IMG/VR virus record: IMGVR_UViG_3300042564_002819
Coordinates: 1-64,000 of that record
Direction: 5' to 3' (one strand)
DNA: 64,000 nt
A program made the translations under genes and the position numbers. A model generated the notes under the pieces. The model saw only the letters and a program-made list of their open reading frames with translations, made no database searches and was not told the DNA's origin. Each line of letters starts with the position of its first letter. Within the stretch, counting starts at the first letter, position 1. Shown piece by piece: positions 42,347-64,000 of the stretch.

Positions 42347-42916
42347 ATGAAAATTAAGAATGTAATAATTCACGGAAAAATTTCCGACCCGTCCTACTTT
42401 GATAAAATGATGTCGCTGCTATCTGCAGATGAAAGTAAGAGAAATGAAAATTATACATATGAAAATATGGATTTTAAAAATCATTTAACTTATGACTTGC
42501 TGCTTACCGACGACGACGAAATCATTTGTTTTAGCGGACTTTATTCTAGACCCGGTTGGGGTGAACGCATTTATAGAAGTTCCAACAGAACTTACGTAAA
42601 TCCTAAATTTAGAAATAATGCATACAACTTTTATAATCCAATGTACATTGTTCCTCATCAGGTAACTAAGTTTCAATCACACATAGATATTGTTTTTAGT
42701 TCTAGAGAGCATTATAAATCAGAATTTTTTTTTAAAAAAGCAAAGACTGTGGTTGACTTTTACAAAGATTGGGATATAATGGATAATATGATAAAAGTTG
42801 TGCCCACGTCAACTAAAAAATCTGCATATCAAAAAGTTATAGTAAAATCTTTTACTGGTGCTAAATTGCCATTTGCATCTATAACAAAAGATGAATGGAA
42901 TATGTTGCCCGATTAA
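42347..42916 (+). CDS. Hypothetical protein, possibly GNAT-like
   Basis: DDEIICFSG...RI....YVNPKFR resembles a GNAT motif A; weak. Confidence 0.45.
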   Translation: MKIKNVIIHGKISDPSYFDKMMSLLSADESKRNENYTYENMDFKNHLTYDLLLTDDDEIICFSGLYSRPGWGERIYRSSNRTYVNPKFRNNAYNFYNPMYIVPHQVTKFQSHIDIVFSSREHYKSEFFFKKAKTVVDFYKDWDIMDNMIKVVPTSTKKSAYQKVIVKSFTGAKLPFASITKDEWNMLPD

Positions 42917-43004
42917 GCTGTGTTTTAAATTTTATAAAACAACTGCCCAATCAAGTAATAGATAAACATAGAAAATTATGTAAGTTGAAAGAAATTAAAA
43001 AATA

Positions 43005-44276
43005 ATGGGTAGATTATACATAAACGATGTAGAAAAATTTATTTTACAAAAACTAAAAAAACCAGATATAACACACCCAGCAATTTATGTTAATCCAGGA
43101 ATAGTAGACTTATCCACTATTCCTTATAAAATTTATAATAAGGATCAAGATTTCTTATTACTTAAAAACGATGTAAGTAACATTTCTATAAAAGTAGAAG
43201 TTAACAACAAAATACATGATTTTTATATTATAAATAAACAATTTGTTAGCACAAATACTTGTAAGTTTTCTAAAGATTCTAATTTATCATTTGGATACGG
43301 TTTAACTGCTTTACCTAATTTGCCTTTGCTTCCTTTTATAGAAAAGTTTAAAATTCCTAAAGACATTGAAGTTATGTCATGGTGGGATGAATGTGTAAAC
43401 AGTGCAAAACATATAAAAGAAAGATATAAAGATATCTTTCTTTGTTTAAGTGGAGGATTAGATTCTGAACTTATGGCTCTTGCATTTATCGATGCTAATG
43501 TTAAATTTACGGCATTTTCTTTAGTTTATAAGCATAAAGATAAAATATTAAACGAACACGATATTAAACACGCTGTTGATTTATGTAAAAAATATAACAT
43601 AAAACTTGTTACCAAAGATGTGAATATTCTAGAAGATCTATATAACAACAGACATAGAGAATATTTTATAAACGGAGTTTATGAAACTTATTTTATTCTG
43701 CCATATCTTTATACTCAACAACTTATGATCGAACACATAAACAAGTTAGGCGGCGTTCCGATCATGGCCTCAGATCAGGTCGAAATGAAACTGAATAAAG
43801 ATGGCGAAGTATGCATCGGAGACTGTTCTTATTCTATAGGCCTTTCTGCTCCTACGTGGGCACACTTGACTAACAACACATGCATTTATGATTTTTTTAT
43901 GTATAGTCCAGAGCAAATATATGCATTTTTAAAACTAGAAGATGTGCAATCAACCAAGACAGTCGATTATAATTTTAAAAGAAAAGTTAGTATGATGCAT
44001 GGATCTCAAAAATTAAAATTTTATGAGAAAATAACAGGCTACGAATACATCAAGGAATCACTATTAATATACTATAAAAAAGAAATGCACGAAATTACAT
44101 TTAACACAATCGAAGATATTGACTGGACTAAAAAACCAATGGCACAGTTTATACATCCAATAAAAGATATAATTTCTGAAAATGAATTTAACAACTGGCA
44201 AATTATTAGAACAACATCAAATGACTTTTTAGCAAGAGGATTTAAAGAAAATGACCCACTATACTACGACATATAA
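43005..44276 (+). CDS. PP-loop (asparagine synthase-like) adenine nucleotide alpha-hydrolase
   Basis: FLCLSGGLDSE PP-loop after an N-terminal domain of about 120 aa. Confidence 0.6.
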   Translation: MGRLYINDVEKFILQKLKKPDITHPAIYVNPGIVDLSTIPYKIYNKDQDFLLLKNDVSNISIKVEVNNKIHDFYIINKQFVSTNTCKFSKDSNLSFGYGLTALPNLPLLPFIEKFKIPKDIEVMSWWDECVNSAKHIKERYKDIFLCLSGGLDSELMALAFIDANVKFTAFSLVYKHKDKILNEHDIKHAVDLCKKYNIKLVTKDVNILEDLYNNRHREYFINGVYETYFILPYLYTQQLMIEHINKLGGVPIMASDQVEMKLNKDGEVCIGDCSYSIGLSAPTWAHLTNNTCIYDFFMYSPEQIYAFLKLEDVQSTKTVDYNFKRKVSMMHGSQKLKFYEKITGYEYIKESLLIYYKKEMHEITFNTIEDIDWTKKPMAQFIHPIKDIISENEFNNWQIIRTTSNDFLARGFKENDPLYYDI

Positions 44277-45600
44277 AAATTTTAAAAAAATAATTATCCT
44301 CGGTGCAGGTAGCATTTCTAATGCACTGTTACCGTTAATATACAAACACATCGAAAATCCTAATGTTACAATTATTTCTGAAGATAACCGAAATAGTGAC
44401 ATCACTGAACAATACAATCTTACTAGAATTTTAAAAAAAATTGAGAAAGATTCTTACAAAGAGCTTCTGTCAAATTATACATCCGACGGTGATCTAGTAA
44501 TTAACTTAACAGTCGACGTGTCTTCACAAGATTTAATCGATTATTGCATGTTAAACAATTTAAATTATATAGATACATGTATTCAACCGTGGCCAGGATT
44601 TTTTGACAACTTTTCGATGTCAGACAGTGAAAGATCAAATTATGGATTAAGAAACAAACTAATCAGTACAAAAAACGATAGAAAAAATAAATCTACAGCT
44701 ATTGTATCGCACGGTGCTAATCCCGGGTTAGTAAACCACATAGTTAAAGACGGAATTTTAAGAATATCAAAAATTCTTGGATACGAAGATACACCCACAA
44801 ATAAAATTGAATGGGCAGAGCTTTCTAAAAAAATAGGACTTAAAACAATACACGTATCTGAGAGAGATTCGCAATTTGACTTATCCGAAAAAAAGAAAAA
44901 CGAATTCGTGAATACTTGGAGCGTTGATGGTTTTATTGCCGAGGGAATATTGCCTGCAGAACTCGGTTGGGGTACACACGAACTAGAAATGCCATCGCAA
45001 GGCTGCAACCACGAATACGGAACAAAGTCATCCATTTTCTTAAAAACTCCCGGATGTTCTACAAAAGTAAAAACATGGACGCCAAGTCATAAAAGTATCG
45101 TAGGCTATTTAATAACACATCAGGAATCTATGTCAATTGCAGAATTTTTAACAACTGATCACTATAGACCGACTGTGCATTATGCATATTGTCCGTGTGA
45201 TGTAGCATCCGAAAGTCTTGAAGAATTAGTTAAAAGAAACTTAAAAGGTCAAGATAATGCAAGAATAATGACAGACTCTCTAGTCGGCGGTATGGACGAG
45301 TTAGGAGTTTTGTTTATGGGAGATTTTGGTGCATACTGGCTAGGAAGTCAACTAAGCATCGACGAAACTAGATCATTGATTAGTCATAATAATGCAACTA
45401 GTCTACAAGTAGTTGCACCGTTGTTTGCTGCAATGCTCTGGGTTAACGAGAACACACATTGCGGATTACTAGAACCTGATGATTTGCCCTATGACTTTAT
45501 TTTAGACAAGTCGATGCCGTATCTCGGTAAGTATGTATTTGTAAAATCAGACTTTACTGTGAAAGATTGGCAATTTGTAAATTTTCTAGTAAGTGAGTAA
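44251..45600 (+). CDS. hss: Homospermidine synthase
   Basis: IILGAGSI Rossmann, YIDTCIQPW, HGANPGLV, NTWSVDGF..EG, WGTHE, GMDELGV, NATSLQV. Confidence 0.87.
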   Translation: MTHYTTTYKNFKKIIILGAGSISNALLPLIYKHIENPNVTIISEDNRNSDITEQYNLTRILKKIEKDSYKELLSNYTSDGDLVINLTVDVSSQDLIDYCMLNNLNYIDTCIQPWPGFFDNFSMSDSERSNYGLRNKLISTKNDRKNKSTAIVSHGANPGLVNHIVKDGILRISKILGYEDTPTNKIEWAELSKKIGLKTIHVSERDSQFDLSEKKKNEFVNTWSVDGFIAEGILPAELGWGTHELEMPSQGCNHEYGTKSSIFLKTPGCSTKVKTWTPSHKSIVGYLITHQESMSIAEFLTTDHYRPTVHYAYCPCDVASESLEELVKRNLKGQDNARIMTDSLVGGMDELGVLFMGDFGAYWLGSQLSIDETRSLISHNNATSLQVVAPLFAAMLWVNENTHCGLLEPDDLPYDFILDKSMPYLGKYVFVKSDFTVKDWQFVNFLVSE

Positions 45601-45614
45601 TCACTTACTAGAAA
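45583..45614. terminator. Hairpin formed by the 3' ends of two convergent genes
   Basis: TTTCTAGTAAGTGA-GTAA-TCACTTACTAGAAA, 14-bp stem with GNRA loop on the + strand. Confidence 0.65.
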
Positions 45615-46182
45615 TAATTGTTGCAACTAAATGTATTCTTTCTTTTGTACTAGCATTAAACGCTGTATGCTTTTTCTGAGTTTCTGTATACCACCATTTA
45701 TTTTTTTCTAAGTGACACACTTGATCTTCTATTACCATTAAGCATCCTTCTTGAGTTTGCATAGGATAATGAACTCTTACATTATGGTCAACATGCCACG
45801 ACAAGCATGTTTTTGGTCTTGATTTCATTATTCTAACTCTGCCCAAGACAAACATACTGTCTAATGCGTTATATGCAGTTTCAAAAAGTGTTCCATGAAA
45901 TCTTGTGCATAGGTGTTTAAAATCTTCTTCTTTTAAAGGATTTTCTCGTACAACAGGATTAGTTGGAATTCCTGATTTAATATCTATCCCTGCTTTGTCC
46001 CAATCTAAATCTAAACTACCAACTCCGTGATGTATATTGTCCGGTTGATCGTCTGTAGTATTTAAACAGATTTGGTTTGGTTCTCTTGGAGAAAAATTAA
46101 TAATATTCATATCTAATAATCTGTTATACTCTTCTATTAAATTAAGTATAGGCAATCCAGATATTTCGCGAAAGTTTTCCAT
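45601..46182 (-). CDS. Aspartyl/asparaginyl beta-hydroxylase-like 2OG-Fe(II) oxygenase
   Basis: RVRIMKSRPKTCLSWHVD (HxD), RVHYPM, HTAFN...RIHLV. Confidence 0.75.
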   Translation of the reverse strand: MENFREISGLPILNLIEEYNRLLDMNIINFSPREPNQICLNTTDDQPDNIHHGVGSLDLDWDKAGIDIKSGIPTNPVVRENPLKEEDFKHLCTRFHGTLFETAYNALDSMFVLGRVRIMKSRPKTCLSWHVDHNVRVHYPMQTQEGCLMVIEDQVCHLEKNKWWYTETQKKHTAFNASTKERIHLVATIISSK

Positions 46183-46195
46183 TTTTTCCTTTTTA

Positions 46196-46726
46196 TTACT
46201 TTGGCAATATTGTCATTGATGTCAATCTATAACTACGAGTCATATTCACAGAATCTATAATAAATTGTGCAGCATCATTAGTATTTATAAAGCTAGATGG
46301 ATTGACCATACTTAAAATCCGTTCAGTGCCTATATAACCAAATCTAAACATAGTAACCTTGCACGGTTTGTTCATATTAGCTAACTGCTCGTTGGCTTTT
46401 TCTAAGCTTGCTTTTTGTGCTGAATATTCGTGAGGATGGCGTTTGATTCCATCTGTAGTATTACTACCAATGTTTATAATAATTTTGTCAAGTTCTGCCC
46501 ATCTATCCCACAATTCATATAGTAACTGTGTTTGAGCATATCCATCATGTGCATTATTAATAAACACATCGCAATGTATAGATTTGTCGATAATGCACTG
46601 TCTACTTAACGGATCTGTTATATCATATCCGGTTGATGTACTAAATCCTACAACTTTGTCATTGCCTACTAAATTAACAATTGCTTTTCCTAAACCATTA
46701 GTATGACCTGTTATTGCAATATTCAT
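46196..46726 (-). CDS. Short-chain dehydrogenase/reductase
   Basis: IAITGHTNGLG, DVFINNA, IINIGS, YSAQK (YxxxK). Confidence 0.82.
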   Translation of the reverse strand: MNIAITGHTNGLGKAIVNLVGNDKVVGFSTSTGYDITDPLSRQCIIDKSIHCDVFINNAHDGYAQTQLLYELWDRWAELDKIIINIGSNTTDGIKRHPHEYSAQKASLEKANEQLANMNKPCKVTMFRFGYIGTERILSMVNPSSFINTNDAAQFIIDSVNMTRSYRLTSMTILPK

Positions 46727-46743
46727 AATTTTATAATTTCCTT

Positions 46744-47796
46744 TTATTTTTTTAATACATCCGATAACTCTGGGATATACTTATCTATACTTTTTTTCAA
46801 TATAAGATCTTGGTACTTTGTTTTTTCCACTAACATCTTATTAAGTTTGTAATTATATTTGTAATCTTTTATAAAACTAGAATTGTAATTGTTTTTATGT
46901 TTTTCTATATATTCCGGTGGCAATGAGTTTAGCGTAAATTCTACAGGATCTTTTATAAGAACAGGATTATGTTCTAAATTAAACTCTTTACTAAAATTAT
47001 TTAATTGTTCTATATTATGAAAATTATATGCCTGCACTACTGTATGAATGTATCTCATACTTTTCTTGTTGTTGTTTTTAAAAAAATCTTCCCATTTTTC
47101 TAAATTTTTAACTACCGAGTCCCATTTACATCCATCACGTATAAATTCGTTAACTCTTTCAGTGCCGTCTATACTGTACCCAACAAAAATTTCATCTGCA
47201 TTAAGTAGTTGTGTTTCGAACTTTTCTGGTGATACAGTCAGATTTGTGTTAATGTAAAATTTTATTTTATTATCACTATGATTTTTAATAAAATTAAAAA
47301 TGTTTTCTATTTCATCTGTAAGTAATGGCTCTCCACCAAGGTATTTTATTGTATTAACCTGTGTTCCAGTAATGCTTTTTAATAATTTTTCTATATTATA
47401 GGAAACTACTCCAGCAGTTTTTAAATTATCTTCAGTTTTCTTCCAAAGACTGCTATGTTTCGGATCGCACATGCGACACCGGCTATTGCATTTATTGCTT
47501 ACCGCAATTTCTAACATATCAAAGACATTTATGTCAGACTGACAATAAAAACTATAGCTATCTCTAACAGAATGCATCCCTAGCATTTCTGTTTTCTTAC
47601 ACGATAAGCACCCTTTGTCCCATGAATCTCCTTCCATATTTTTTCTTATAGAAGCAATATAATCCGAATTTAAAAATTCTAAAGGTGTTAAATCATCTAC
47701 TGTGTACGGACTTGTTTCAGGATATTCGCAGCAAGGTCTATATTTTCCACTAATTTCTACACATACTTGATTATATAACGCTTTACATAAGGGCAT
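46744..47796 (-). CDS. Radical SAM protein with N-terminal SPASM/twitch-like domain
   Basis: CNSRCRMC, LGGEP; N-terminal CKA...RPCC...CLSC. Confidence 0.88.
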   Translation of the reverse strand: MPLCKALYNQVCVEISGKYRPCCEYPETSPYTVDDLTPLEFLNSDYIASIRKNMEGDSWDKGCLSCKKTEMLGMHSVRDSYSFYCQSDINVFDMLEIAVSNKCNSRCRMCDPKHSSLWKKTEDNLKTAGVVSYNIEKLLKSITGTQVNTIKYLGGEPLLTDEIENIFNFIKNHSDNKIKFYINTNLTVSPEKFETQLLNADEIFVGYSIDGTERVNEFIRDGCKWDSVVKNLEKWEDFFKNNNKKSMRYIHTVVQAYNFHNIEQLNNFSKEFNLEHNPVLIKDPVEFTLNSLPPEYIEKHKNNYNSSFIKDYKYNYKLNKMLVEKTKYQDLILKKSIDKYIPELSDVLKK

Positions 47797-48914
47797 TATA
47801 ATTCTTTCTTAAACTTTGGAATTTTACTATCTGCACTGCTTACACAACTAGATGTTATGCACGGCATAGGTTTGTCAAACAATTTAAATCCTGTTTCGAT
47901 ATTACCCAACGGAACATCGTGGCATGAATACGAACGTTTAACCGATCCATCCGGCTCTCTAATAATTATGCCCTGGTATCCTGCATTGCAACTCCAACCT
48001 TTAAAGTTATTGAAGTTAAACGCATTAAATCGTTCGGCCTGATCCATATACCATTTTTCGCCTTTAGAGTCGGTAAACTCTACTTGCATGTGCCACGGCA
48101 CAGTAGCATCATTACGTCCTATTGTGTAGTCAGGAAGTTCAAATGTCGGAGTCGGTCTGTTTGCCCAGATACGTTTGTTTTCTGTATATGCTCGTTGTGG
48201 CATTCCGTTCCACAGTCTCTTAAGCATATCAGGAGTATAACCATCTACTACCCTGCTAGCAGTAGGATCACTTTGTGGCTTGAGTGTAACGTTAATTCCC
48301 TGTTCGTGGAAGAATAAAGCATTTTCCCAATCCTTTTCGAACCATTCTGGAACCATAACCATATTGATTGTAATTTGTATATCATATTCTTGACACAGGA
48401 TTAACTTGTCTGCAAAATCCTGCATCTTTTCCTTTGTGTCTAAATGTTCTGTATGCAAGCTAGCAGTAATACTTGCACGATGAAAGGGCTTAGAATATTC
48501 TACGTATTGTTCAAACCATTTCATTGGCCTTGAACAATTTGATGTCATATGAATGGAAGTGTAATTAGTATTAGAAACATCATCAGCAAGATATTTGAGA
48601 ATATCCAAATACCCAGGGTGAAAAGTAGGCTCGCCACCAGATAAACTAAAATGAAAGCTATTAAAACCGTTATCACGTGCTTGACGTTTTATTTCGTCGA
48701 TTGTTTTGAGACATAGCTCTGTAGGTCGATGATCTTTTGTGTTGGATCTTGCGTACGGCCAACAATAGCTGCATCTGTAGTTGCAGAATCTTCCAAGGAG
48801 CCAAGATACAGTAAATAAGTCTCTATATAAGAGTGTCCGTTGGCCGACTTGGACAATGTCGTCAAACGGGATTTTGGTAAAGTCATAATTGCTCCATTTT
48901 AAATCTTCGGTCAT
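47796..48914 (-). CDS. Radical SAM protein with C-terminal twitch-like domain
   Basis: CNYRCSYC, SGGEP, TSN; C-terminal CNAG...SC...CITSSC. Confidence 0.88.
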   Translation of the reverse strand: MTEDLKWSNYDFTKIPFDDIVQVGQRTLLYRDLFTVSWLLGRFCNYRCSYCWPYARSNTKDHRPTELCLKTIDEIKRQARDNGFNSFHFSLSGGEPTFHPGYLDILKYLADDVSNTNYTSIHMTSNCSRPMKWFEQYVEYSKPFHRASITASLHTEHLDTKEKMQDFADKLILCQEYDIQITINMVMVPEWFEKDWENALFFHEQGINVTLKPQSDPTASRVVDGYTPDMLKRLWNGMPQRAYTENKRIWANRPTPTFELPDYTIGRNDATVPWHMQVEFTDSKGEKWYMDQAERFNAFNFNNFKGWSCNAGYQGIIIREPDGSVKRSYSCHDVPLGNIETGFKLFDKPMPCITSSCVSSADSKIPKFKKEL

Positions 48915-48920
48915 ATTTTT

Positions 48921-48948
48921 AGTATAACACCTTTCTCGTATTTGTCAA
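48921..48948 (-). promoter_or_regulatory. Sigma70-type promoter, probably leaderless
   Basis: Minus strand TTGACA-16nt-TATACT; ATG at 48914 is the 7th nt after the -10 box. Confidence 0.65.
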
Positions 48949-48979
48949 TTATGTTTATATTTAACAGATAAGTATTAGC

Positions 48980-49942
48980 ATGATTTATGACGAGCTCACT
49001 CATTTTAAAAACTATGTATTTGTAGATTGGGATATAAGTAGTCGCTGCAATTACAATTGCTATTACTGCACACCCGAGTCACATGACGGAAAAATAAATT
49101 TTCCCGATATAACTGTTGCAAAAAAAGTAGTCGAAAAAATAGAGAAAGAATACAGTTCTTGTAAAGAATTTGCAGTGTATAATCTTTTAGGTGGAGAACC
49201 TACTATATGGAATGATTTGCCAGAATTTAGCAAATATATCAAATCTATTAACAACAAAAATATATTACAATTGTTGACAAACGGCAATAGAACACTAAGA
49301 TGGTGGGAAAATTCTGCACCATACATAGATAAAATTATTGTTAGTGTGCATGTTGCACAAACCGATATTGTTAAATTAGTAGAAAAGTTTAACAAGCTAG
49401 CAGATAAAATCTATATAGACTTTCAATTTGCAATGGATGTTGCAGTGTTTGATCAAGCCGTTGAAGATTATTATTATGCTTATAACAACCTGCATGAAAA
49501 TATTTGTTTATATTCTAAGCCTTTACGGAAAGTGTTAAATAACACCGAATTGATGCCATATACAGAATTGCAAATTGAAACTATTAAAAAGTTACCATCT
49601 AAATGGAGCAGATCTATCGAAATATTCGAAACTCCTATGGTTAAAAAGCTTAACGGAACAGTTGTAGACCCTGCTGTTAATATTGGTAAATTAGTTTTAT
49701 CAAAAGAAAACAACTGGTACGGATGGGCTTGTTGGATTGGCATAGATACTATTACTATTAATCGATACGGAAATGTTAAAATAGGTTCTGGTTGCAACCC
49801 CGACCTAGTGCTCGGTAATATAAATTCTTTAGATTTTAAATTTCCACTGATTCCTGTCAAGTGTAAATATACTACTTGTGGATGTTTTGCTGATATATCT
49901 ACAACAAAAAAATTAAACTACACAGGACCTATGATTCTTTAA
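48980..49942 (+). CDS. Radical SAM protein with C-terminal twitch-like domain
   Basis: CNYNCYYC, LGGEP, TNG; C-terminal CWIG...GC...CKYTTCGC. Confidence 0.88.
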   Translation: MIYDELTHFKNYVFVDWDISSRCNYNCYYCTPESHDGKINFPDITVAKKVVEKIEKEYSSCKEFAVYNLLGGEPTIWNDLPEFSKYIKSINNKNILQLLTNGNRTLRWWENSAPYIDKIIVSVHVAQTDIVKLVEKFNKLADKIYIDFQFAMDVAVFDQAVEDYYYAYNNLHENICLYSKPLRKVLNNTELMPYTELQIETIKKLPSKWSRSIEIFETPMVKKLNGTVVDPAVNIGKLVLSKENNWYGWACWIGIDTITINRYGNVKIGSGCNPDLVLGNINSLDFKFPLIPVKCKYTTCGCFADISTTKKLNYTGPMIL

Positions 49943-52024: not shown

Positions 52025-52035
52025 TTTAAAGTTTT

Positions 52036-53145: not shown

Positions 53146-53158
53146 GTTTTTTAAATCC

Positions 53159-53180
53159 TATAAATATATGCATGTATTTA
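53159..53180. promoter_or_regulatory. Divergent late-type promoter boxes
   Basis: Exact TATAAATA on + at 53159..53166; TAAATA on - at 53175..53180, between divergent genes. Confidence 0.5.
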
Positions 53181-53208
53181 ACTTTAACAGAGAGATAAAG
53201 ATTTATAT

Positions 53209-54723: not shown

Positions 54724-54731
54724 GGAAAAAC

Positions 54732-55442: not shown

Positions 55443-55443
55443 A

Positions 55444-56250: not shown

Positions 56251-56258
56251 GATTAATC

Positions 56259-57014: not shown

Positions 57015-58182
57015 AACTTTTTGCAGCATGGCTTGGAACCATCAGTTTATCGATCCTACAGGACGAGTTAAGCCGTGTTGCAGATTTGCAGAAAAATTTA
57101 GACCAGTAGAAAACAATCTTAACAATAAAACATTGAGTGAAGTGTTTTATGGCGAGTGGATGACTGATATTCGACAAAAAATGCTAGCCGGAGACACTGT
57201 GCCGGGCTGCATTAGATGCTATCAAGAAGAAGCAGCCGGTAAAAAAAGTCTGCGAGAACGTTACCACGAAAACAAAGATCTTCCTATAGACGAGCTAGTT
57301 AATCTAACAAATCCAACTATTCGTTGGATAGAGCTTGCTATTAGCAACGATTGTAATCTTGCATGTAGGATGTGCGACAGTCGTTATGCGTGGAAATGGT
57401 TTAAAGAAGAAAAAGAGATGTACGGGTCCACTCTTAACACTGTTGAACACAGCAAAAGTGACATATCAAACATCTTTCCATTTATAAACGATCTAGTACA
57501 TATAAAATTTACAGGCGGAGAACCATTATTAACAAAAGATCAATGGCTATTAGTTGATAAAATGCTTGAGGAAAGAGACTGTAGTGACATTTTATTAAAT
57601 TATTCAACTAATTGTACAATAATGCCAAAAGACAGTTGGGTTGAAAAATGGAAAAAATTTAAACAAGTTGAATTTGCATTAAGTTTTGATAGTGCAAATC
57701 CTGCAGAATCTGAATATATACGTTGGCCTGCAAAATTTGAAACAACCGAAGCAGTTACAAAAAGATTTTTAGAACTTAAAAAAGAACATGGATTTCATGT
57801 ATTTTTAAGAAGTACTATAAGTTTATTGAATGTTTGGTACATGCCAGAAAGTATGCAATGGTGGCACGACAACGATCCTTCGTCAGTTAAAATAATGAAT
57901 CCTACACACTTGACATATCCCGAAAACTTATCTGTTACAGTATTACCACAGCATATTAAAGAAAGAATCACTTTAAAATTTGTTGATTATCAAAAAAATT
58001 GTAATATTAAAAAGATAAATGAAAGTTTAGAATACATCAAAAATTACATGAATAGCAAGGATGACAGTCATTTACTTCCGAGTTTAAAATCATATATAAC
58101 TCAGACCGATGCTTATAGAAATCAAGATTTTTTTAAAAACTATCCTCAATTTTCAGATATATTTGAACAATTGTGTGTTTGA
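56998..58182 (+). CDS. Radical SAM protein with N-terminal SPASM/twitch-like domain
   Basis: FCSMAW...KPCC...CIRC..E..GKKSLR; CNLACRMC; TGGEP. Confidence 0.88.
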   Translation: MHIPSKTFCSMAWNHQFIDPTGRVKPCCRFAEKFRPVENNLNNKTLSEVFYGEWMTDIRQKMLAGDTVPGCIRCYQEEAAGKKSLRERYHENKDLPIDELVNLTNPTIRWIELAISNDCNLACRMCDSRYAWKWFKEEKEMYGSTLNTVEHSKSDISNIFPFINDLVHIKFTGGEPLLTKDQWLLVDKMLEERDCSDILLNYSTNCTIMPKDSWVEKWKKFKQVEFALSFDSANPAESEYIRWPAKFETTEAVTKRFLELKKEHGFHVFLRSTISLLNVWYMPESMQWWHDNDPSSVKIMNPTHLTYPENLSVTVLPQHIKERITLKFVDYQKNCNIKKINESLEYIKNYMNSKDDSHLLPSLKSYITQTDAYRNQDFFKNYPQFSDIFEQLCV

Positions 58183-59255
58183 TATTGTTTATACATATAA
58201 GAATCTTTTTTGCAATTTATTATGCAACTAGTACAAACATTATCAGATTTCCATGTTTCTTTGATCTTTTTAAAAATTTTAACTTGATCTAATATCCTAT
58301 CTATCGGATTTAATATTACATTGTTAAAAAAATAATCCTTTCTTATAGAATCTTTAAAAATTTCAACTATACTATCATATAGTATATTTTGTTTATAGTC
58401 TTGTTCGAATCCTATTGCAGTATGACAACACGGCCAAAGTCTCTGATCGTACGATAAAAACACACTGTTTTCATTTAAAGCATTACAAGATATTTTTCCT
58501 TTTCTCACTATCTTAGGACTTTCTAAACTATTTGCATACCCAACATCGGCACCATAATATTTGTGCCATTTTTTATCAAAGTGTTTAGTATCTCGTACAA
58601 TGTCGTTATTTTTAATATTATATGGTTCTAAAAAGTATGAATGTTCTAAATTTTTATCTACTACTGATAATTTTTTTTCTTTAAATCTTGTTGATTCTCT
58701 TGTAGCAAATTCGGTAAACTTGAGGTCAAATGCTAGTTTTTTGCATTCATCTATTTGATGTGCATTGTGTTTAAAAAGAGTCATCTCCCATCTAGCTATA
58801 CCACCAGATTCAATGTATGCTTTTGCATTTTGTATAACTCGCGAAAAAGAAGTATTTCTTCTATACAAATGATGGGTATCTTCTAATCCATCAATACCAA
58901 ATCTTACTTCAACATTTGGCTGTTCGCCTAACCATTTCCAAAATTCTAATGATTGTGCTCCGCCGTTTGTATGTATATTGATTTTAAAATTTAATTCAAC
59001 AAATACTTCTATTATCGATTTTGGATTAGTGTGCATTACAATATCTCCAAAATTTCCATTTATTAGTACCGTTTCGATGTCTTTAAAGAAAGGATGAGCT
59101 AATGTATTTTTTAAGTCAACTGCATTCCACTCTGAAATATTTAAGCGTGGATAAGTTTCTAGACTAGTTTCAAACGTCCTAGGACATTGCGGACATCTTG
59201 CATTACACGCACTAGTCGGTTCAAAATGAAGCATAGTTATAGGTGATGAATACAT
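58146..59255 (-). CDS. Radical SAM protein with C-terminal twitch-like domain
   Basis: CNARCPQC, INGNFGD, TNG; C-terminal C...WPCC...CIINC. Confidence 0.88.
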   Translation of the reverse strand: MYSSPITMLHFEPTSACNARCPQCPRTFETSLETYPRLNISEWNAVDLKNTLAHPFFKDIETVLINGNFGDIVMHTNPKSIIEVFVELNFKINIHTNGGAQSLEFWKWLGEQPNVEVRFGIDGLEDTHHLYRRNTSFSRVIQNAKAYIESGGIARWEMTLFKHNAHQIDECKKLAFDLKFTEFATRESTRFKEKKLSVVDKNLEHSYFLEPYNIKNNDIVRDTKHFDKKWHKYYGADVGYANSLESPKIVRKGKISCNALNENSVFLSYDQRLWPCCHTAIGFEQDYKQNILYDSIVEIFKDSIRKDYFFNNVILNPIDRILDQVKIFKKIKETWKSDNVCTSCIINCKKDSYMYKQYQTHNCSNISEN

Positions 59256-59257
59256 GT

Positions 59258-60481
59258 TTACTCCTCGTAATATTCGTAGTATTTTAATTTTTCGTTAATA
59301 TAGTCTTGTAATAATGGGTTTACATCTTTTAGTGACAGTTTTCTTACTTTGCTAAAATACTCAATTGCTTCACTAAATTGTTTAATTCTACGTAATGTTA
59401 TATCTGAGCCGATTGTATTATATACTACTTGCAAATTTTCAATAATTTCTTCGTAGTTATCAAATCGATTTCTAAATTTATTTACAATTTTTATAGATCT
59501 TTTAACATACTTTTTAAATCTGTCGTCAAGAAATCCTACTGTTATACCCGGAGTGTAAACAATATTGGCTTTTACATCAATTTTAATTTTGTATTTCATA
59601 GTAATATAAATTAAAAAATTAAAATAGTCAGGCAACATTGTTATAGATATTGGATTTATTGCCATGTTTGTACTCATTAAATATCCTGTATTTGCCCACT
59701 TTTTAAAATTTTCAACAAATCTATCGTAAGAGCATCCATATCTAATATATTCAAAATTTTGTCCAACACTTTCAGCACTGATAGATATTAAGTAATTTAA
59801 ATTTGGATATTTTTGTTTGTAAAAACTCATTTTTTCTAAACACTTATCCATTATCTTAGGAGGAGTATTTGCATTTGTTTGTATAGTTAATAAGAGATAT
59901 GTATTCGGATCTGTATTTTTATAAAAACTCTCAATGGTCAAATCCAACAGTTCTTTTTTGTTTATACTCATTAGTAAAGGCTCTCCTCCTAAGAGTATTA
60001 TTTCGTAATAGTCATCTTCTTTTTTATTTTTAGCAACTTCGGAAATATAATTAAAAACATAGTCAGCATATTTTTTAGGAGTATGTTTATTTTTTATTTC
60101 TCTGTCAGCCCACGTTGGCGGCTCAACACTTGTATTTAATATTTCTTGTTCCCATTTACTACTGTAAATTCTACTACAATAGACACAAGCAGAATCACAG
60201 GTATTGTCAAAGTAAAGTTCAATTTGATATTTGTTCGGTCGTTTTTCGTAATGTTCGTTGCCGTGCATTCTCCACGATTTATTTTTAGAAAACTCAGCTT
60301 TCCAACAAGTATTACAAGAATTATTTTTTATACCATTTTGCAAATCTGTTTTTATTTTTTCAAGGTCGTCTGTAAACATTTCTGCACCAGGATGCATTTT
60401 ACAACAAAGACATACTGTATTTTCTAACGGTCTGAATACTATTTCATGAGAACTTCTTTTACATCCAAGATTATCTTGCAT
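59258..60481 (-). CDS. Radical SAM protein with N-terminal SPASM/twitch-like domain
   Basis: GCKR...CLCC...CNTCWKAE; CDSACVYC; LGGEP. Confidence 0.85.
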   Translation of the reverse strand: MQDNLGCKRSSHEIVFRPLENTVCLCCKMHPGAEMFTDDLEKIKTDLQNGIKNNSCNTCWKAEFSKNKSWRMHGNEHYEKRPNKYQIELYFDNTCDSACVYCSRIYSSKWEQEILNTSVEPPTWADREIKNKHTPKKYADYVFNYISEVAKNKKEDDYYEIILLGGEPLLMSINKKELLDLTIESFYKNTDPNTYLLLTIQTNANTPPKIMDKCLEKMSFYKQKYPNLNYLISISAESVGQNFEYIRYGCSYDRFVENFKKWANTGYLMSTNMAINPISITMLPDYFNFLIYITMKYKIKIDVKANIVYTPGITVGFLDDRFKKYVKRSIKIVNKFRNRFDNYEEIIENLQVVYNTIGSDITLRRIKQFSEAIEYFSKVRKLSLKDVNPLLQDYINEKLKYYEYYEE

Positions 60482-61691
60482 TTTGTTTTACCTTAGTTGC
60501 CCAATTTGCTAATTCTGGATTATAATCATAAATGTTAAATCCTCTTAGAGAATTAATATAATCGATCCATCGCAATGCATGAGAATTGTCTTCATCAGTT
60601 GCCGAATATTTTAAAGTCTTTAATCTTTCTGTTCTTTCAAAAATTATAGGATTTTTTAAATATTCTGTATTGTTAAAAAAATCATTTACTAATCTATCTA
60701 TGTCGTTTTGTGGAACGATACTATATGCAGAATACTTTGGAAGAAAAACATAGTAATAAGCAAATACATCTACTAATCCTGTTTTTAACAACTCGTTTGC
60801 TGATTCCTTAAGAGTCCATAATGTATAGAGTGAAACTGTACTACTTGCTATAACTCTTTTTCCTGTTCTTCTTAAATATGTTTCCATATTTTCAAGTGTT
60901 TGTTCATAAGGAGTACTACGTATCCATTCGTAGATTTTTCCTGTGCCGTCAAGACTTGCAGTAACTAATAATTCAACATTGGGATTTTTATTTAACTTTT
61001 CTAAAATGTCCCAAATTTCTTCTGTAATTACTGCCCAATTAGAAACAATTAAAATACGCATTTCGTATTTTTTATCTACAATTTCTTTTAAAACTCTTAT
61101 ATTTCTTGGATCTGCAAAGGGCTCGCCCCCTTTAATAAGTAAAAACTTAATCGACGGTAACACTTCTAAAATCTTTTTCATGTCGTCGTCGGTGGCCTGG
61201 AAAGCCTTTGTATGTAAGTTTGATAATCCAGAATTTTCTCTAAATTCTAAACCTTCTTTTTTTGCACGTTTATCTAGTCCTATCCATTTACTGCTATAGA
61301 TACTTCCGCACATAGCACAGCTTTGATTACATAAGTTACTTGGAGTATACTCTAGTGATAAAATTTGCTTTCTCGAAGAATTAAAATTTTCATCCGACCA
61401 AGGAAGATTAACATAATGATCGTTGTCTATATGGGCAGGAATTCCATTTTCTCTATTGTCTTTGCAAGCTACACATGCACTTGGCCATTCACCTTTTTTA
61501 AATTTATTACGAATGCCATTTATTATGTCATTGTTGTAATAGTCAGTTAATGATGCTACCTCGCTAATATATGACCCGTGTTTTTTGCCAACTGTGCATA
61601 ATTTTAAATCTCCCAATGGACCAATGTTAAGTTGGCTCCACGGGGCTTTACACATCATCGGTCTACGAGATTGATATTCTTTATCAGACAT
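60471..61691 (-). CDS. Radical SAM protein with N-terminal SPASM/twitch-like domain
   Basis: MCKAPW...KLC...CVAC; CNQSCAMC; KGGEP; probable start MSDKEY at 61691. Confidence 0.87.
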   Translation of the reverse strand: MSDKEYQSRRPMMCKAPWSQLNIGPLGDLKLCTVGKKHGSYISEVASLTDYYNNDIINGIRNKFKKGEWPSACVACKDNRENGIPAHIDNDHYVNLPWSDENFNSSRKQILSLEYTPSNLCNQSCAMCGSIYSSKWIGLDKRAKKEGLEFRENSGLSNLHTKAFQATDDDMKKILEVLPSIKFLLIKGGEPFADPRNIRVLKEIVDKKYEMRILIVSNWAVITEEIWDILEKLNKNPNVELLVTASLDGTGKIYEWIRSTPYEQTLENMETYLRRTGKRVIASSTVSLYTLWTLKESANELLKTGLVDVFAYYYVFLPKYSAYSIVPQNDIDRLVNDFFNNTEYLKNPIIFERTERLKTLKYSATDEDNSHALRWIDYINSLRGFNIYDYNPELANWATKVKQNAR

Positions 61692-62565
61692 TATATCCCC
61701 TTGCGTCAAATCTATTATCAACTAGCATTCTTAAAGGAGTTCTAACACTTACAAAAGTTCCATTATGAGATGCAATATTTATAGAATCAGTTTCTTCTAA
61801 TTTAAAATCTTTGCAAACTTTTGTATATTCTTTATTATAATTTTTCCACCAAAAGTCCGAGCCAAACCTGTCTATCATATTACACCCAATCCACATGTCG
61901 CTTACGTTATTATATCCAAAGTTATTCATAATATTTATAGGACCATCGATTTGTTCTTTACTGTATCGAACACCAATTCTTTGAGATCCCATCGAAAAGG
62001 CTTTACTTAGGCTAATTGAAAACGTCTTGATAGCAGAATGTGACAAATCTATATCAATGTTTTTACACTGTCCTAGCCATGCTGCATCTATGTGAACGTC
62101 GATAGAGTTTTTGTAACAAAAGTCTAAGAGTCGATCTATGTCGGGTATATTCCCTGCTGTTTTAACAGAAGGATAAGAAATAACTAGAACTGATCCTGAC
62201 GGTATTGCAGAATAATGTGTTACTTTTAAAATTTTTGGATTTAATCTCCAATGATATGCATACTCGCCTTCGAATATTACTAACTTATTACTGTATCTGT
62301 AATGCAGTTCGTCTATTTGCTGTGAAACACCTAATATAGCATCAGTAAATTTAAAAGACTCTAAATTTTTAATATTATTTAATTTAGAATTTTTAATCCA
62401 AGCTGTAACTTTTTCTATAAAGTATTTTGTATATTGATTGCTATCTGTTGGATATTCTTTCATATCTAGAGAATCTCGAAACCCAATAATTTTACCAACT
62501 AACATAGGAGGAATTCTAGATGTTAAAAACTTTTCTACACTTAAGTTATTATAATCCATATACAT
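61684..62565 (-). CDS. PLP-dependent enzyme (aminotransferase/decarboxylase fold type I)
   Basis: VHIDAAW and SISLSKAF (PLP lysine), RIG. Confidence 0.75.
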   Translation of the reverse strand: MYMDYNNLSVEKFLTSRIPPMLVGKIIGFRDSLDMKEYPTDSNQYTKYFIEKVTAWIKNSKLNNIKNLESFKFTDAILGVSQQIDELHYRYSNKLVIFEGEYAYHWRLNPKILKVTHYSAIPSGSVLVISYPSVKTAGNIPDIDRLLDFCYKNSIDVHIDAAWLGQCKNIDIDLSHSAIKTFSISLSKAFSMGSQRIGVRYSKEQIDGPINIMNNFGYNNVSDMWIGCNMIDRFGSDFWWKNYNKEYTKVCKDFKLEETDSINIASHNGTFVSVRTPLRMLVDNRFDARGYNV

Positions 62566-63916
62566 CGCCTTTTAACAATGCCCATGTTTTTTCGCATACA
62601 TCTTTTAGTTTTTCTTTTCTTGACTTATCTAATGTATTTGTATAATACCAAAACTTTTCTAAATCTTTAGAATGATCTTCTGAGTTCATAAATTTTATAT
62701 ATTGATCTAATATCTTACAAAAATACTTAAAGTTTTCCGATTTTTCTTTTTCGGTTAAATCTAGCAACGAAATCTCTGCTTTAGCTTCAATCTTTTTTTG
62801 TTCAAAGTAATTTTCTATCCACTGCTTACTTTCTTTTGGAAATATTTGAATATTTAAGAACTTTGGATTATGTAAAGGATGCGGACTTATTACCGGCTTG
62901 TGTTGCACCTCAACATTAATTCTTTTAAATTTTTGTTTGATTTTCCAAAGCATCATATCAGGCAAGTGAACTAGATTATATGCTTGTATAGTAGCAGCCC
63001 ACCATATTTTAAAATCTCCTTCAGCAGCGTCTAATTTTCGCATATTTTCTTCTATCTTGTGCCATTTGCTAGGATTTCTTATATAATCGTTTATTGGTCC
63101 TACAGCATCAACACTCATTCCAATTTGTATACGTTCAAAATGCTTCCAAATATTCCAAGCACGTTCTGGAATATTAGTAATATTTGTATTGTATTCTATC
63201 ACAATAGATTTAGATCTTCCGGCATCTATGCACTTTTGTAAAAACTCGTAATGTTGGTCTATTAATAAAGGTTCCCCTCCAACGATGTATAATCGTTCTA
63301 TTGTAGGAATTTCTTGTTCCATTTCCTTCCAAAAAGCAGGCTTTTCGTACCAAGAATAGATATCAACTTCGGGTTTATGCTTTCCGTTTGCTGTTTTTAT
63401 TAATTTTACAGTTTGCCCGCTATCTTTATATTGATTTCCCCAAAGCAATACGTTGTCATCGTACCACTGACTGCTATCTGTAGGCCCACACATTCTACAT
63501 TTTAAATTGCAAAGATTTCCAAAACGAAGATCCATGTATTTTATAGGATTTTCTTCTAAATCAATTGATCCATCTTGCTTCGTTTTTGATATGGCATCTT
63601 CTTTATTAATTACATGAGCCCATATATCTCTTTCCCAACTAGCTCTACTTTCCATTCCTGATTCTGCTTCACGTTTACATCTAATGCATGATTCGTGATA
63701 TTCATTATTTAACATAGCTAATCTAACTTCTTTCATTAGATTGCTGTTTCTAAATCCGTGTATAGTTTCAGTTGATAGGTTGTAATTCGATCCTGTTTCT
63801 GTTTTTACTAATCCCTGATTAATACTAACATTTGCATTACAACATATTCTTACATCGCCGTTATTTCTTACATTTAAACTCATCCACGGCAGTGGACAAA
63901 ATGCGTTATTTTCCAT
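62549..63916 (-). CDS. Radical SAM protein with N-terminal SPASM/twitch-like domain
   Basis: FCPLPW...RICC...CIRC..E..G.ESR; CNLKCRMC; VGGEP. Confidence 0.9.
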   Translation of the reverse strand: MENNAFCPLPWMSLNVRNNGDVRICCNANVSINQGLVKTETGSNYNLSTETIHGFRNSNLMKEVRLAMLNNEYHESCIRCKREAESGMESRASWERDIWAHVINKEDAISKTKQDGSIDLEENPIKYMDLRFGNLCNLKCRMCGPTDSSQWYDDNVLLWGNQYKDSGQTVKLIKTANGKHKPEVDIYSWYEKPAFWKEMEQEIPTIERLYIVGGEPLLIDQHYEFLQKCIDAGRSKSIVIEYNTNITNIPERAWNIWKHFERIQIGMSVDAVGPINDYIRNPSKWHKIEENMRKLDAAEGDFKIWWAATIQAYNLVHLPDMMLWKIKQKFKRINVEVQHKPVISPHPLHNPKFLNIQIFPKESKQWIENYFEQKKIEAKAEISLLDLTEKEKSENFKYFCKILDQYIKFMNSEDHSKDLEKFWYYTNTLDKSRKEKLKDVCEKTWALLKGDVYGL

Positions 63917-63930
63917 TTATAAATCCTATA

Positions 63931-64000
63931 TTAAGAAAGTTGCTTATCGTTTTTATTTTTTCCATGTCCGCTACTAAACTCAAATTTTTTGCCACAAGTT
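63931..64000 (-). CDS. C-terminal fragment of the next gene (5' partial), possibly another radical SAM twitch end
   Basis: Manual translation ..TCGKKFEFSSGHGKNKNDKQLS*; TCG resembles the CIKTCG end of 52036..53145. Confidence 0.3.
   Translation of the reverse strand, partial: TCGKKFEFSSGHGKNKNDKQLS

Follow-up and report, generated by a model that had tools for sequence, protein, structure and literature searches.

A 64,000-nt window (the whole stretch of DNA analyzed, bases 1-64000 of the 330,024-bp viral contig, IMG/VR record IMGVR_UViG_3300042564_002819) was examined for the genes at positions 42347-63916. This region is 98.8% coding and is tiled by 21 ORFs on both strands, here numbered o1 to o21, with g numbers used for genes of the wider locus. 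Protein sequences were searched against Pfam, NCBIfam, PHROG and PDB profiles or sequences, paralogues were identified by BLASTP, and orthologues were compared for invariant residues; ORFs were named from these results, or from motifs alone where indicated. The features identified within the window, including the supply genes upstream of the island, were as follows.

18360..20454 (+), sugar-nucleotide supply genes outside the island: nucleotidyltransferase, HAD/PMM-like protein and NDP-sugar dehydrogenase.
24799..26825 (+), GT1-like protein (faint hit) and GalE-like epimerase outside the island; galE scored 194.5 bits, below the 262 cutoff.
31860..32954 (+), phage S-adenosylmethionine synthetase outside the island, likely supplying SAM (precomputed Pfam S-AdoMet_synt_N, _M and _C; phrog_1569).
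40835..42280 (+), fibre-like protein (481 aa, g55) marking the left border of the island; Pfam Chlorovi_GP_rpt 27.9 bits and Mtd_N 23.2 bits, a weak precomputed PTL_trimer hit, repeated GDGS.L motifs in the translation and no PDB sequence hit; homologues sit next to rSAM islands in other viral contigs.
42286..42318, hairpin between the fibre gene and o1, with 16-nt arms (42286-42301 and 42303-42318) that are 100% complementary; it is AT-rich with no clear T-run, and terminator function is not shown.
42347..42916 (+), o1, 189 aa, unknown; no Pfam, NCBIfam or PHROG hit, with weak homologues (25-33%) at the same border in other viral loci.
43005..44276 (+), o2, 423 aa, PP-loop ATPase (adenylating amidotransferase- or thiolase-type); ATP_bind_3, NAD_synthase and QueC all below cutoff, SGGLDSE motif, no PDB hit.
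44251..45600 (+), o3, bacterial-type homospermidine synthase; Sacchrp_dh_NADP and Sacchrp_dh_C, and PDB 2ph5 at E 2.5e-106 over its full length; probably an independent polyamine gene at the island edge.
45583..45614, 14-bp-stem hairpin at the convergent o3/o4 junction, from a scan for terminator-like structures.
45601..46182 (-), o4, Asp/Arg beta-hydroxylase-type (cupin, 2OG/Fe) oxygenase; PF05118 (Asp_Arg_Hydrox) at 39.8 bits, above the 22.6 cutoff, with homologues in 8 viral loci.
46196..46726 (-), o5, short SDR-like oxidoreductase; weak profile hits (adh_short 17 bits, NF006099 25 bits), with TGxxxGxG and YxxxK motifs read by eye.
46744..47796 (-), o6, rSAM with an N-terminal Cys-rich 'twitch' domain; CNSRCRMC, NF033640 at 200 bits, above the 170 cutoff.
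47796..48914 (-), o7 (g48), the most conserved rSAM of the island class, with four invariant C-terminal Cys; CNYRCSYC, Radical_SAM 58.5 bits, 72-93% identical in 44 viral loci and about 65% in Bdellovibrionota; its profile gave only weak hits to anSME and viperin cores.
48980..49942 (+), o8, rSAM, distant paralogue of o7, with weak viperin/MoaA/QueE-like hits.
49939..51417 (-), o9, B12-binding (class B) rSAM, methyltransferase-like; B12-binding 34 bits and Radical_SAM 62 bits, both above cutoff; the best NCBIfam matches, PhpK and RiPP C-methyltransferase families, were far below their cutoffs.
51401..52087 (-), o10, 228 aa, unknown; no hits, and one orthologue (53%) in the related locus L096.
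52036..53145 (-), o11, rSAM of the g30/g33/g38/g44 family; CNASCPMC, W_rSAM_matur 80.8 bits, well below the 380 cutoff.
53209..54723 (+), o12, B12-binding rSAM, paralogue of o9 (33%); orthologues are 62-69% identical in Bdellovibrionota.
54732..55442 (+), o13, 236 aa, possible 2OG/Fe oxygenase by motif only; H92, D94 and H213 invariant in 8 orthologues, no significant profile hit.
55444..56250 (+), o14, QueC-like PP-loop protein, paralogue of o15 (BLASTP E 1e-24); SGGPDSA motif plus C-terminal CWWCRER motif.
56259..57014 (+), o15, QueC-like PP-loop protein, paired with o16; Pfam QueC 22.7 bits (cutoff 22), not a QueC orthologue (TIGR00364 not reached); the o15-o16 pair recurs in other phages and in Bdellovibrionota.
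56998..58182 (+), o16 (g39), N-twitch rSAM used as the anchor for searches; NF033640 at 304 bits, invariant C27, C28, C71 and C74 plus the CNLACRMC motif, 394 homologues at E below 1e-5.
58146..59255 (-), o17, rSAM, paralogue of o11 (E 1e-31); CNARCPQC.
59258..60481 (-), o18, divergent N-twitch rSAM; CDSACVYC, NF033640 at 132.6 bits, below the cutoff.
60471..61721 (-), o19, N-twitch rSAM; NF033640 at 195 bits.
61684..62565 (-), o20 (g35), 293 aa, possible fold-type-I PLP enzyme by motif only; D160, S185, K188 and R196 invariant in 12 orthologues, PDB profile search not significant.
62549..63916 (-), o21 (g34), N-twitch rSAM; CNLKCRMC, NF033640 at 368 bits.
63917..64000 (-), 3' end of the next rSAM gene (g33; 349 aa with a GTG start, carrying CNCACPQC).

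Exactly 11 of the 21 ORFs carry one CxxxCxxC each (o6, o7, o8, o9, o11, o12, o16, o17, o18, o19 and o21), and the count of 11 radical-SAM (rSAM) genes in the initial annotation was thereby confirmed. All 11 hit Pfam Radical_SAM; nine were above the gathering score, and o17 (25.1 bits) and o21 (28.5 bits) were just below 29.5. None of 18 large ORFs upstream has the motif. The labels of homospermidine synthase, SDR, two QueC-like enzymes and one 2OG oxygenase (o4) were retained at the strengths listed above. Other labels are weaker than the initial annotation stated: o2 is PP-loop only and 'Asn-synthase-like' is not specifically supported, the second 2OG oxygenase (o13) and the PLP enzyme (o20, a conserved D/S-x-x-K/R motif) rest on motifs alone, and no support was found for a GNAT-like ORF in o1 or o10. 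GC content was 31.8% in the island against 37.0% upstream (Mann-Whitney p = 7e-7), and GC3 was 0.24 against 0.30; the far flank returned to 36.5%.

The island continues about 29 kb past the window end, to about position 92,908 of the contig. In total it spans roughly 50.5 kb, of which the window holds the proximal 43%, and it has 48 genes and 17 intact rSAMs. The rSAMs fall into four anciently diverged families (eight N-twitch, four o11-type, three B12-type and two o7-type), only 20-35% identical to one another but 40-93% identical to orthologues elsewhere, so these are distinct functions rather than recent duplicates. Seven island proteins pass the cutoff of NF033640, 'twitch domain-containing radical SAM protein' (o6, o16, o19, o21, g12, g25 and g31); as this family has no assigned function, membership names the fold but not the reaction. 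Beyond the window the island also holds an NDP-sugar dehydrogenase, a GDP-fucose-synthase-like epimerase/reductase and a DegT-like protein. None of the 48 island proteins is a multi-pass membrane protein, and 69 of 77 related viral loci also lack one.

Although sequence profiles found no glycosyltransferase family, structures predicted with AlphaFold and compared by Foldseek indicated two GT-A-like and four GT-B-like proteins, all of them outside the window. The g26 model (pLDDT 90) matched only GT-A glycosyltransferases among its top PDB hits, such as K4CP, ArnC, RmlT, ppGalNAcT, SunS and TarS, and its viral matches are GT2 proteins, including one from Mycobacterium phage Che8 and others from giant viruses. 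g11 is a stand-alone homologue of the g26 catalytic domain. The g14 model (pLDDT 94) matched GT-B glycosyltransferases, and g16, g18 and g20 are its paralogues. The Foldseek E-values were modest (1e-6 to 1e-3).

The island is phage-borne. The contig carries PolB, ClpB and fibre genes on both sides of it; PolB is 45-50% identical to jumbo T4-like phages, and Fibre, Collar and Peptidase_G2-like genes lie on the far side. The left junction was assembled in at least 6 samples and the right part in at least 3. The island is not unique to this phage, but belongs to a widespread, unstudied class: relatives were found in 358 IMG/VR stretches, with 5-14 rSAM ORFs per 20 kb in most of the 77 non-identical loci, and the island recurs next to homologues of the same fibre-side genes (g55-g57) in divergent phages. 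Cellular relatives are mostly Bdellovibrionota, and no cultured phage has a close one.

The initial annotation had proposed a phage biosynthetic cluster modifying virion proteins or glycans, DNA or a small molecule, with no substrate identifiable in the window, and this was supported. The window part contains only tailoring enzymes, but the glycosyltransferase-like proteins and NDP-sugar enzymes of the same island make a glycan the best-supported product class, and a virion glycan the most likely of the options named. With moderate confidence, we read the locus as a hypervariable island, lying between fibre-type genes of a T4-related jumbo phage, that encodes a wholly cytoplasmic factory which builds and heavily tailors a glycan and consumes much SAM. 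That the product is a glycan is considered likely; that the acceptor is a virion protein is more tentative, and each individual reaction is inferred. Under this reading, phage genes outside the island (nucleotidyltransferase, PMM-like protein, NDP-sugar dehydrogenase, GalE-like epimerase and SAM synthetase) would provide sugar nucleotides and SAM. Sugars or NDP-sugars would then be altered by enzymes in the window and beyond: C-methylation by the three B12-type rSAMs; radical oxidation, epimerisation, deoxygenation or C-C chemistry by the N-twitch, o11-type and o7-type rSAMs; amidation of carboxylates such as uronic acids by PP-loop QueC-like enzymes; and further decoration by PLP, amidinotransferase-like, SDR, 2OG-oxygenase, SGNH-like and methyltransferase-like proteins. 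Soluble GT-A-like proteins (g26, g11; probably g08 and g09) and GT-B-like proteins (g14, g16, g18, g20) would join the sugars on an acceptor inside the cell, most likely a virion surface protein encoded next door, such as the fibres or the 4603-aa giant protein.

Several results weigh against this reading, among them the absence of a glycosyltransferase inside the window, the modest Foldseek E-values and the lack of a glycosyltransferase family in the sequence profiles. The core most conserved across phages (o7/g48, g31, g30, the 75-aa g29, g34) is rSAM-dominated, and only g26/g11 and the methyltransferase-like g27 link it to sugars. No rSAM here is close to a characterised sugar-modifying rSAM, the best hits being far below family cutoffs. 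Nothing ties the product to the fibres except position, and hypervariable islands tend to gather near fibre genes regardless of function; peripheral glycosyltransferases could instead act on host lipid-linked glycans.

Remodelling of the host envelope is the strongest alternative, but was considered unlikely. Here the same enzymes would make or alter sugars added to the host's own lipid-linked LPS, capsule or cell-wall glycans, the host's flippase and ligase would complete the job, and the result would mask receptors and block superinfection or competing phages. This is the interpretation given for glycosyltransferases in pelagimyophage host recognition clusters (PMC7029224). The GT-A matches include enzymes acting on lipid or teichoic-acid acceptors (ArnC, RmlT and TarS), peripheral glycosyltransferases need no transmembrane helix, and the cellular relatives in Bdellovibrionota presumably serve a cellular glycan. 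However, the 48 genes include no initiating polyprenyl-phosphate transferase, flippase, polymerase, ligase or transporter, tailoring on this scale (17 rSAMs) seems costly for a lytic-cycle exclusion function, and the position between fibre genes recurs.

RiPP-like or direct protein modification is less probable still. The rSAMs, B12 C-methyltransferases and hydroxylases would act on amino-acid side chains or backbone (epimerisation, cross-links, C-methylation) of a fibre protein or of g29, with glycosylation secondary (glycocin- or proteusin-like logic). The nearest named families for several rSAMs are peptide maturases (the RiPP C-methyltransferase TIGR03975, sactipeptide/ranthipeptide/cyclophane maturases, anSME and PDB 8vpo), but at low scores, far below family cutoffs. 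g29 is 61-81% identical across phages and overlaps the start of rSAM g30, Asp/Asn-hydroxylase-type oxygenases often act on proteins, and g26 also matches the peptide S-glycosyltransferases SunS and ThuS and the ppGalNAcTs. Against this, no RiPP recognition element, leader peptidase or Cys-rich or repeat precursor was found, g29 has no Cys and no homologue in the bacterial clusters that share g30, g31 and g48, and the many sugar-nucleotide enzymes and glycosyltransferases would be left unexplained.

Hypermodification of DNA, in which a 7-deazapurine-type or other modified base is made and possibly glycosylated to evade restriction, is doubtful. The phage encodes GTP cyclohydrolase I (146 bits) followed by a QueE-like rSAM and SAM synthetase at 29948-32954, the island has four PP-loop proteins with QueC-like features, and T4-type phages glycosylate DNA (Pyle 2024, as cited in PMC12619734). 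However, no DpdA/TGT, QueD, bona fide QueC (scores of about 17-28 bits against a 150-bit cutoff) or dCMP/dUMP hydroxymethylase was seen in the roughly 102 kb of the contig inspected. Six to eight glycosyltransferases and 17 rSAMs far exceed any known DNA-modification pathway, and cellular relatives form chromosomal clusters in Bdellovibrionota without an evident DNA-insertion enzyme.

A small-molecule product (an aminoglycoside-, nucleoside- or pseudo-oligosaccharide-like compound that poisons competitors or reprogrammes the host) was judged improbable. rSAMs, B12 C-methyltransferases, aminotransferase-, amidinotransferase- and SDR-like proteins and glycosyltransferases would be typical of aminoglycoside and nucleoside antibiotic clusters (BtrN, GenK, AprD4, KedN5), g17 scored 242 bits to the KedN5 family, and the enzymes are all soluble. 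There is, however, no exporter, resistance gene or scaffold-forming enzyme such as a 2-deoxy-scyllo-inosose synthase, the hypervariable, fibre-flanked position is atypical for such clusters, and all family scores were below cutoffs. Misjoined bacterial DNA, suggested by the lower GC and by closest cellular homologues in Bdellovibrionota MAGs, is effectively refuted, as identical junctions on both sides appear in independent JGI and Logan assemblies, phage fibre genes lie on both flanks, eighty related viral loci show the same arrangement, and identity to bacterial orthologues is only 33-72%.

Among described systems, the host recognition cluster of pelagimyophages and cyanomyophages (Zaragoza-Solas et al. 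2020, PMC7029224) is a large (mean 44.6 kb) non-syntenic island inside the structural region of T4-like aquatic myophages, and in pelagimyophages holds tail fibres, glycosyltransferases and rSAM cassettes. Several related loci found here (for example L012 and L099) look like this type, with o7 and o16 orthologues at 76-87% identity. The present island differs in that it lies in a 330-kb jumbo phage related to Atu_ph07/Phosso-type phages, that rSAMs dominate, and that its glycosyltransferases belong to unannotated families; that paper did not analyze the rSAM cassettes or propose a function for them. In the Mimivirus fibril and chlorovirus capsid glycan clusters, and in mycobacteriophage capsid and tail glycosylation (Freeman et al. 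2023, as cited in PMC12619734), the virus carries its own sugar-nucleotide synthesis, tailoring enzymes and soluble glycosyltransferases, with glycosyltransferase genes beside structural genes, and glycosylates its surface proteins in the cytoplasm without host export machinery. Virion glycosylation is not demonstrated for the present phage, and none of those systems appears to use rSAM enzymes. Flagellin or pilin O-glycosylation islands of Campylobacter, Helicobacter and Clostridium are probably comparable as hypervariable clusters of soluble enzymes, with PP-loop amidotransferases (PseA-type), aminotransferases and methyltransferases, that decorate a filament protein before export and need no flippase; these use nonulosonic-acid pathways, no Pse, Leg or Neu synthase was seen here, and the rSAM content is unmatched. 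The chemistry proposed here would have precedent in aminoglycoside and related sugar-tailoring rSAMs (BtrN, GenK/GenD1, AprD4, DesII), in which twitch-type and B12-type enzymes can oxidise, deoxygenate and C-methylate sugars, but no orthology was detectable, and the Cys-rich domain is N-terminal in NF033640 whereas it is C-terminal in BtrN and MoaA.

Multi-rSAM clusters were also found in Bdellovibrionota chromosomes and MAGs, for which no description was found in the literature searched. These lack g29 and the fibre flanks, and some of the short MAG contigs may themselves be mis-binned phage DNA. They share orthologues of o7, o11, o12, o13-o16, o20, o21, g26, g27, g30, g31, g33 and g18 at 33-72% identity, in clusters of up to about 35-40 kb on a 936-kb contig.

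The interval 42347-63916 was tiled by 21 ORFs (o1 to o21) with a coding density of 98.8%. Eleven of these carried one CxxxCxxC motif each and matched Pfam Radical_SAM (PF04055), with scores above the cutoff for nine and just below it for o17 and o21, which were rescued by the NCBIfam model NF033640 or by paralogy. None of 18 large upstream ORFs had the motif. The hairpin and the lower GC content (31.8% vs. 37.0%, p = 7e-7) described in the initial annotation are real, but nothing was found to support the GNAT-like ORF that it also proposed. The non-coding and junction features of this interval and its left border are as follows.
42286-42318, hairpin with perfect 16-nt arms.
45583-45614, hairpin with a 14-bp stem, on which o3 and o4 converge.
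58146-58182, 37-nt overlap of the 3' ends of the convergent genes o16 (+ strand) and o17 (- strand).

The 11 radical-SAM (rSAM) proteins fell into four old families. For the N-terminal 'twitch' rSAMs of NF033640 (cutoff 170 bits), o6, o16, o19 and o21 passed with full-length matches of 200, 304, 195 and 368 bits, whereas o18 was divergent at 133 bits and did not pass; C27, C28, C71 and C74 were invariant in 16 relatives of o16. Proteins o9 and o12 matched both PF02310 and PF04055 above cutoffs, i.e., the N-terminal B12-binding domain plus rSAM domain of class B (cobalamin-dependent) rSAM methyltransferases. The remaining two families were an o11/o17 pair and an o7/o8 pair, the latter with weak viperin/MoaA/QueE-like similarity.

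Among the other ORFs, o3 is a bona fide bacterial-type homospermidine synthase (PDB 2ph5, E 2.5e-106, residues 12-436) and o4 is an Asp/Arg-hydroxylase-type oxygenase. Proteins o2, o14 and o15 are PP-loop proteins, of which o14 and o15 have QueC-like C-terminal Cys motifs. They are QueC-like and not QueC orthologues, as o2 scored 17 bits against TIGR00364 (cutoff 150 bits), o15 did not reach the model, and only the PP-loop and a C-terminal Cys motif were shared. SDR-like similarity of o5 rested on weak profiles plus motifs. Catalytic-looking invariant residues were kept in the orthologues of o13 (H..D...H) and o20 (D...S-x-x-K...R), but no profile or PDB search supported them. Searches of the unknown ORFs with Pfam, PHROGs and NCBIfam gave nothing usable, and PDB sequence and profile searches with o2, o7, o16, the fibre, o13, o20 and two proteins from beyond the window (g26 and g14) gave either nothing or only generic rSAM-core hits.

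The T4-type late promoter motif TATAAATA was not enriched (6 hits vs. 10.5 expected), counts of sigma-70-like promoters and terminators were not above those in shuffled sequences, and no tRNA genes were found in the window. Almost all genes upstream of the island are on the + strand, whereas the island has at least six alternating transcription units.

The window corresponds to bases 1-64000 of a 330,024-bp viral contig (IMGVR_UViG_3300042564_002819 = Ga0453070_0000008). Upstream of the island lie PhoH, DnaJ, peptide deformylase, a ClpB-type ATPase, a family-B DNA polymerase (45-50% identical to those of the 469-490-kb phages Phosso and Atu_ph07), a 5'-3' exonuclease and a MoxR/VWA pair. The fibre-to-island junction was found in at least six independent assemblies, and the sequence beyond the window in at least three, with 100% identity where they overlapped the window. 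Misassembly and bacterial contamination were rejected. The upstream gene blocks are as follows.
4704-8260, chaperone and protein-quality block with DnaJ, peptide deformylase and a 752-aa ClpB-type double-AAA ATPase (phrog_4871, 824 bits).
18360-20454 and 24799-26825, a second, smaller sugar-nucleotide cluster outside the island, with an RfaE-domain-II/cytidylyltransferase-like protein, a PMM/HAD-IIB protein, a truncated-looking NDP-sugar dehydrogenase, a faint GT1 and a GalE-like epimerase.
29948-32954, GTP cyclohydrolase I (FolE, 146 bits), a 96-aa unknown, a QueE-like rSAM with a non-canonical cluster motif (CNFRCQNF...) and an S-adenosylmethionine synthetase in a row, which looks like a partial 7-deazapurine or pterin module plus SAM supply, about 9 kb upstream of the island.
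36823-39304, MoxR-type AAA ATPase followed by a DUF2201 metallopeptidase/VWA protein, a conserved pair just upstream of the fibre gene.

To determine the extent of the island, overlapping loci of an identical 121,779-bp contig were stitched. The island runs from 42,347 to about 92,908 and comprises about 50.5 kb and 48 genes at 31.5% GC, after which the GC content returns to 36.5%. Genes of the island and its borders carry the prefix g, and fetched loci the prefix L. In the far flank (L009:1-758 and upstream), a 4603-aa protein with faint CBM_5_12 and FG-GAP hits lies next to three paralogous fibre-type genes (g02-g04; Collar domain, Peptidase_G2-like) that share an N-terminal domain. The whole island has 17 intact rSAMs: eight N-twitch, four of the o11 type, three B12-type and two of the o7 type. 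Beyond the window, g31, g25 and g12 matched NF033640 at 414, 311 and 313 bits, and g17 matched the KedN5 family at 242 bits, below its cutoff of 700. The apparent truncation of the rSAM g33 (320 vs. 349 aa) is only a start-codon call, as the DNA is identical. Paralogues were only 20-35% identical to each other, while orthologues elsewhere were 40-93% identical; these are therefore distinct, old functions, and recent duplication within the island was rejected.

The part of the island beyond the window encodes an NDP-sugar dehydrogenase, a GDP-fucose-synthase-like epimerase/reductase, a DegT-like fragment, a 2OG oxygenase, a fourth QueC-like protein, and proteins with amidinotransferase-, SGNH- and methyltransferase-like motifs read by eye. 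The 857-aa protein g26 (L005:19307-21880) had no Pfam, PHROG or PDB sequence hit. It consists of five to six 103-aa repeats plus a C-terminal domain with an invariant D-x-D (D687, D689). The top 50 PDB hits of its AlphaFold model (pLDDT 90) were all GT-A glycosyltransferases, and among viral models it matched GT2 proteins of phages and giant viruses. The JGI name 'CYTH domain-containing protein' for g26 homologues was not supported by the model, in which the fold is GT-A plus repeats. The copy number of the repeat varies widely among homologues (about 640 to 1500 aa). Protein g11 is a stand-alone copy of the C-terminal domain, and in some phages the g11-type catalytic domain is fused into proteins of 1077-1222 aa at the g26 position. 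The g14/g16/g18/g20 family was modelled at pLDDT 94 (g14), and its best matches were GT-B glycosyltransferases in general. Membership of a sequence family (CAZy/Pfam) was not found for these proteins; their assignment as glycosyltransferases rests on predicted fold. DxD motifs were seen by eye in g08 and g09. None of the 48 island proteins had more than one hydrophobic 19-mer at or above KD 1.6, i.e., none is a multi-pass membrane protein, and the initiating polyprenyl-P transferase, flippase or transporter, and polymerase of a Wzx/Wzy- or ABC-dependent surface-polysaccharide locus were not found.

The best-supported reading is a cytoplasmic pathway that assembles and tailors a glycan and consumes much SAM, although each individual reaction and the acceptor are inferred. 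In this reading, sugar nucleotides and SAM are supplied by phage genes, the sugars are tailored by rSAMs, PP-loop amidating enzymes and aminotransferase-, amidinotransferase-, SDR-, oxygenase- and methyltransferase-like proteins, and the predicted soluble GT-A and GT-B enzymes join them on an acceptor. Virion surface proteins were taken as the most likely acceptor because the pathway has no export machinery, the island sits between fibre genes in many phages, and giant viruses and mycobacteriophages set a precedent. If this is right, tailed phages can run glycan biosynthesis as elaborate as that of giant viruses, with radical-SAM chemistry that has no characterised counterpart. The phage-encoded SAM synthetase fits a real metabolic investment. 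Seven of the 17 rSAMs belong to a family (NF033640) with no known function. The two glycosyltransferase-like families are also unannotated; one (g14/g16/g18/g20) has more than 8,700 relatives among 50%-identity representatives and the other more than 800 homologues.

Of the alternatives, remodelling of host lipid-linked glycans is the view taken for pelagimyophage islands in PMC7029224. RiPP-like protein modification, perhaps of g29, is another; this 75-aa Cys-free protein (L004:14083-14310), which overlaps the start of rSAM g30, was the only precursor candidate, it had no Pfam or PHROG hit, and no recognition element (RRE) or leader peptidase was detected in the searches made. For 7-deazapurine or DNA modification, FolE and the QueE-like gene lie at 29948-31793, but QueD, true QueC and DpdA were not seen in the approximately 102 kb of the 330-kb contig that was inspected. 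A small-molecule product was also considered.

Relatives of the island were frequent among uncultured viruses. Protein o16 had 394 homologues at E below 1e-5, many at 75-90% identity, and 358 stretches in IMG/VR encode relatives, the island type being common in aquatic viral contigs. Of the 80 loci fetched, 77 were not identical to the window, and most of these carried 5-14 rSAM ORFs within about 20 kb. A conserved core emerged, comprising o7/g48 (median 84% identity), g31, g30, g34 (o21), g29 (61-81% identical across divergent phages, median 76%), g27, and g26 or g11. The remaining genes come and go as cassettes; for example, locus L096 is syntenic at 37-88% identity, whereas locus L097 lacks o8, o9, o10, o17, o19, o20 and g32. 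Homologues of the fibre-side genes g55-g57 flank the island in several divergent contigs. No cultured phage had a close relative: megablast of the island against 50,697 phage records gave no match, and tblastn of o16 against cultured phages gave only 22-25% identity hits to generic rSAMs of KVP40-type phages. A sizeable part of viral 'dark matter' near host-recognition genes may thus be explained by one mechanism.

The closest described system is the 'host recognition cluster' of pelagimyophages and cyanomyophages (PMC7029224), where rSAM cassettes were mentioned in passing but not analyzed; no other description of such islands was found in the literature searched. As in that system, the island is hypervariable and contains glycosyltransferases (supported by predicted fold) and rSAM cassettes; it has fibre-type genes on both sides and shows cassette-level differences between related loci (L096-L098 and others). 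New here are the scale (17 rSAMs and about 50 kb in a jumbo phage), the structural evidence linking the rSAM core to unannotated glycosyltransferase families, the all-soluble nature of the pathway, the breadth of the class in viral contigs, and the Bdellovibrionota connection.

Among 185,579 species genomes, relatives of the o16 subfamily were overwhelmingly in Bdellovibrionota, including Mb-scale contigs, although the search patterns were specific to this subfamily and some short MAG contigs may be mis-binned phage DNA. One 'MAG' contig (JAUHVL010000001.1, 349,524 bp, 'bacterium isolate 1_bin.12'), which is close in size to the 330-kb phage and carries both island modules, may be a mis-binned jumbo phage genome. 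The concentration of cellular relatives in Bdellovibrionota gives a tractable bacterial entry point, and also a host or gene-exchange hypothesis. A more speculative and rather unlikely possibility is that the island writes a hypervariable, radical-SAM-tailored glycan onto the phage's fibres, and that this glycan is itself a determinant of host recognition or a shield against defences, so that host range would be encoded partly in sugar chemistry that changes by swapping enzyme cassettes. As the toolkit is shared with predatory Bdellovibrionota, which also attach to Gram-negative prey, this would point to a common 'predator surface-glycan' system and to a large reservoir of new radical sugar chemistry (N-terminal-twitch rSAMs paired with QueC-like ATPases). 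A 936-kb contig of a Bdellovibrionia MAG (JAUHWH010000001.1) carries a cluster of about 35-40 kb that shares 14 island families at 33-69% identity, while g29 was absent from the bacterial clusters. The multi-rSAM cluster on this contig ends next to two phage-type integrases and a P4 cII-like gene, so it may itself sit on a mobile island.
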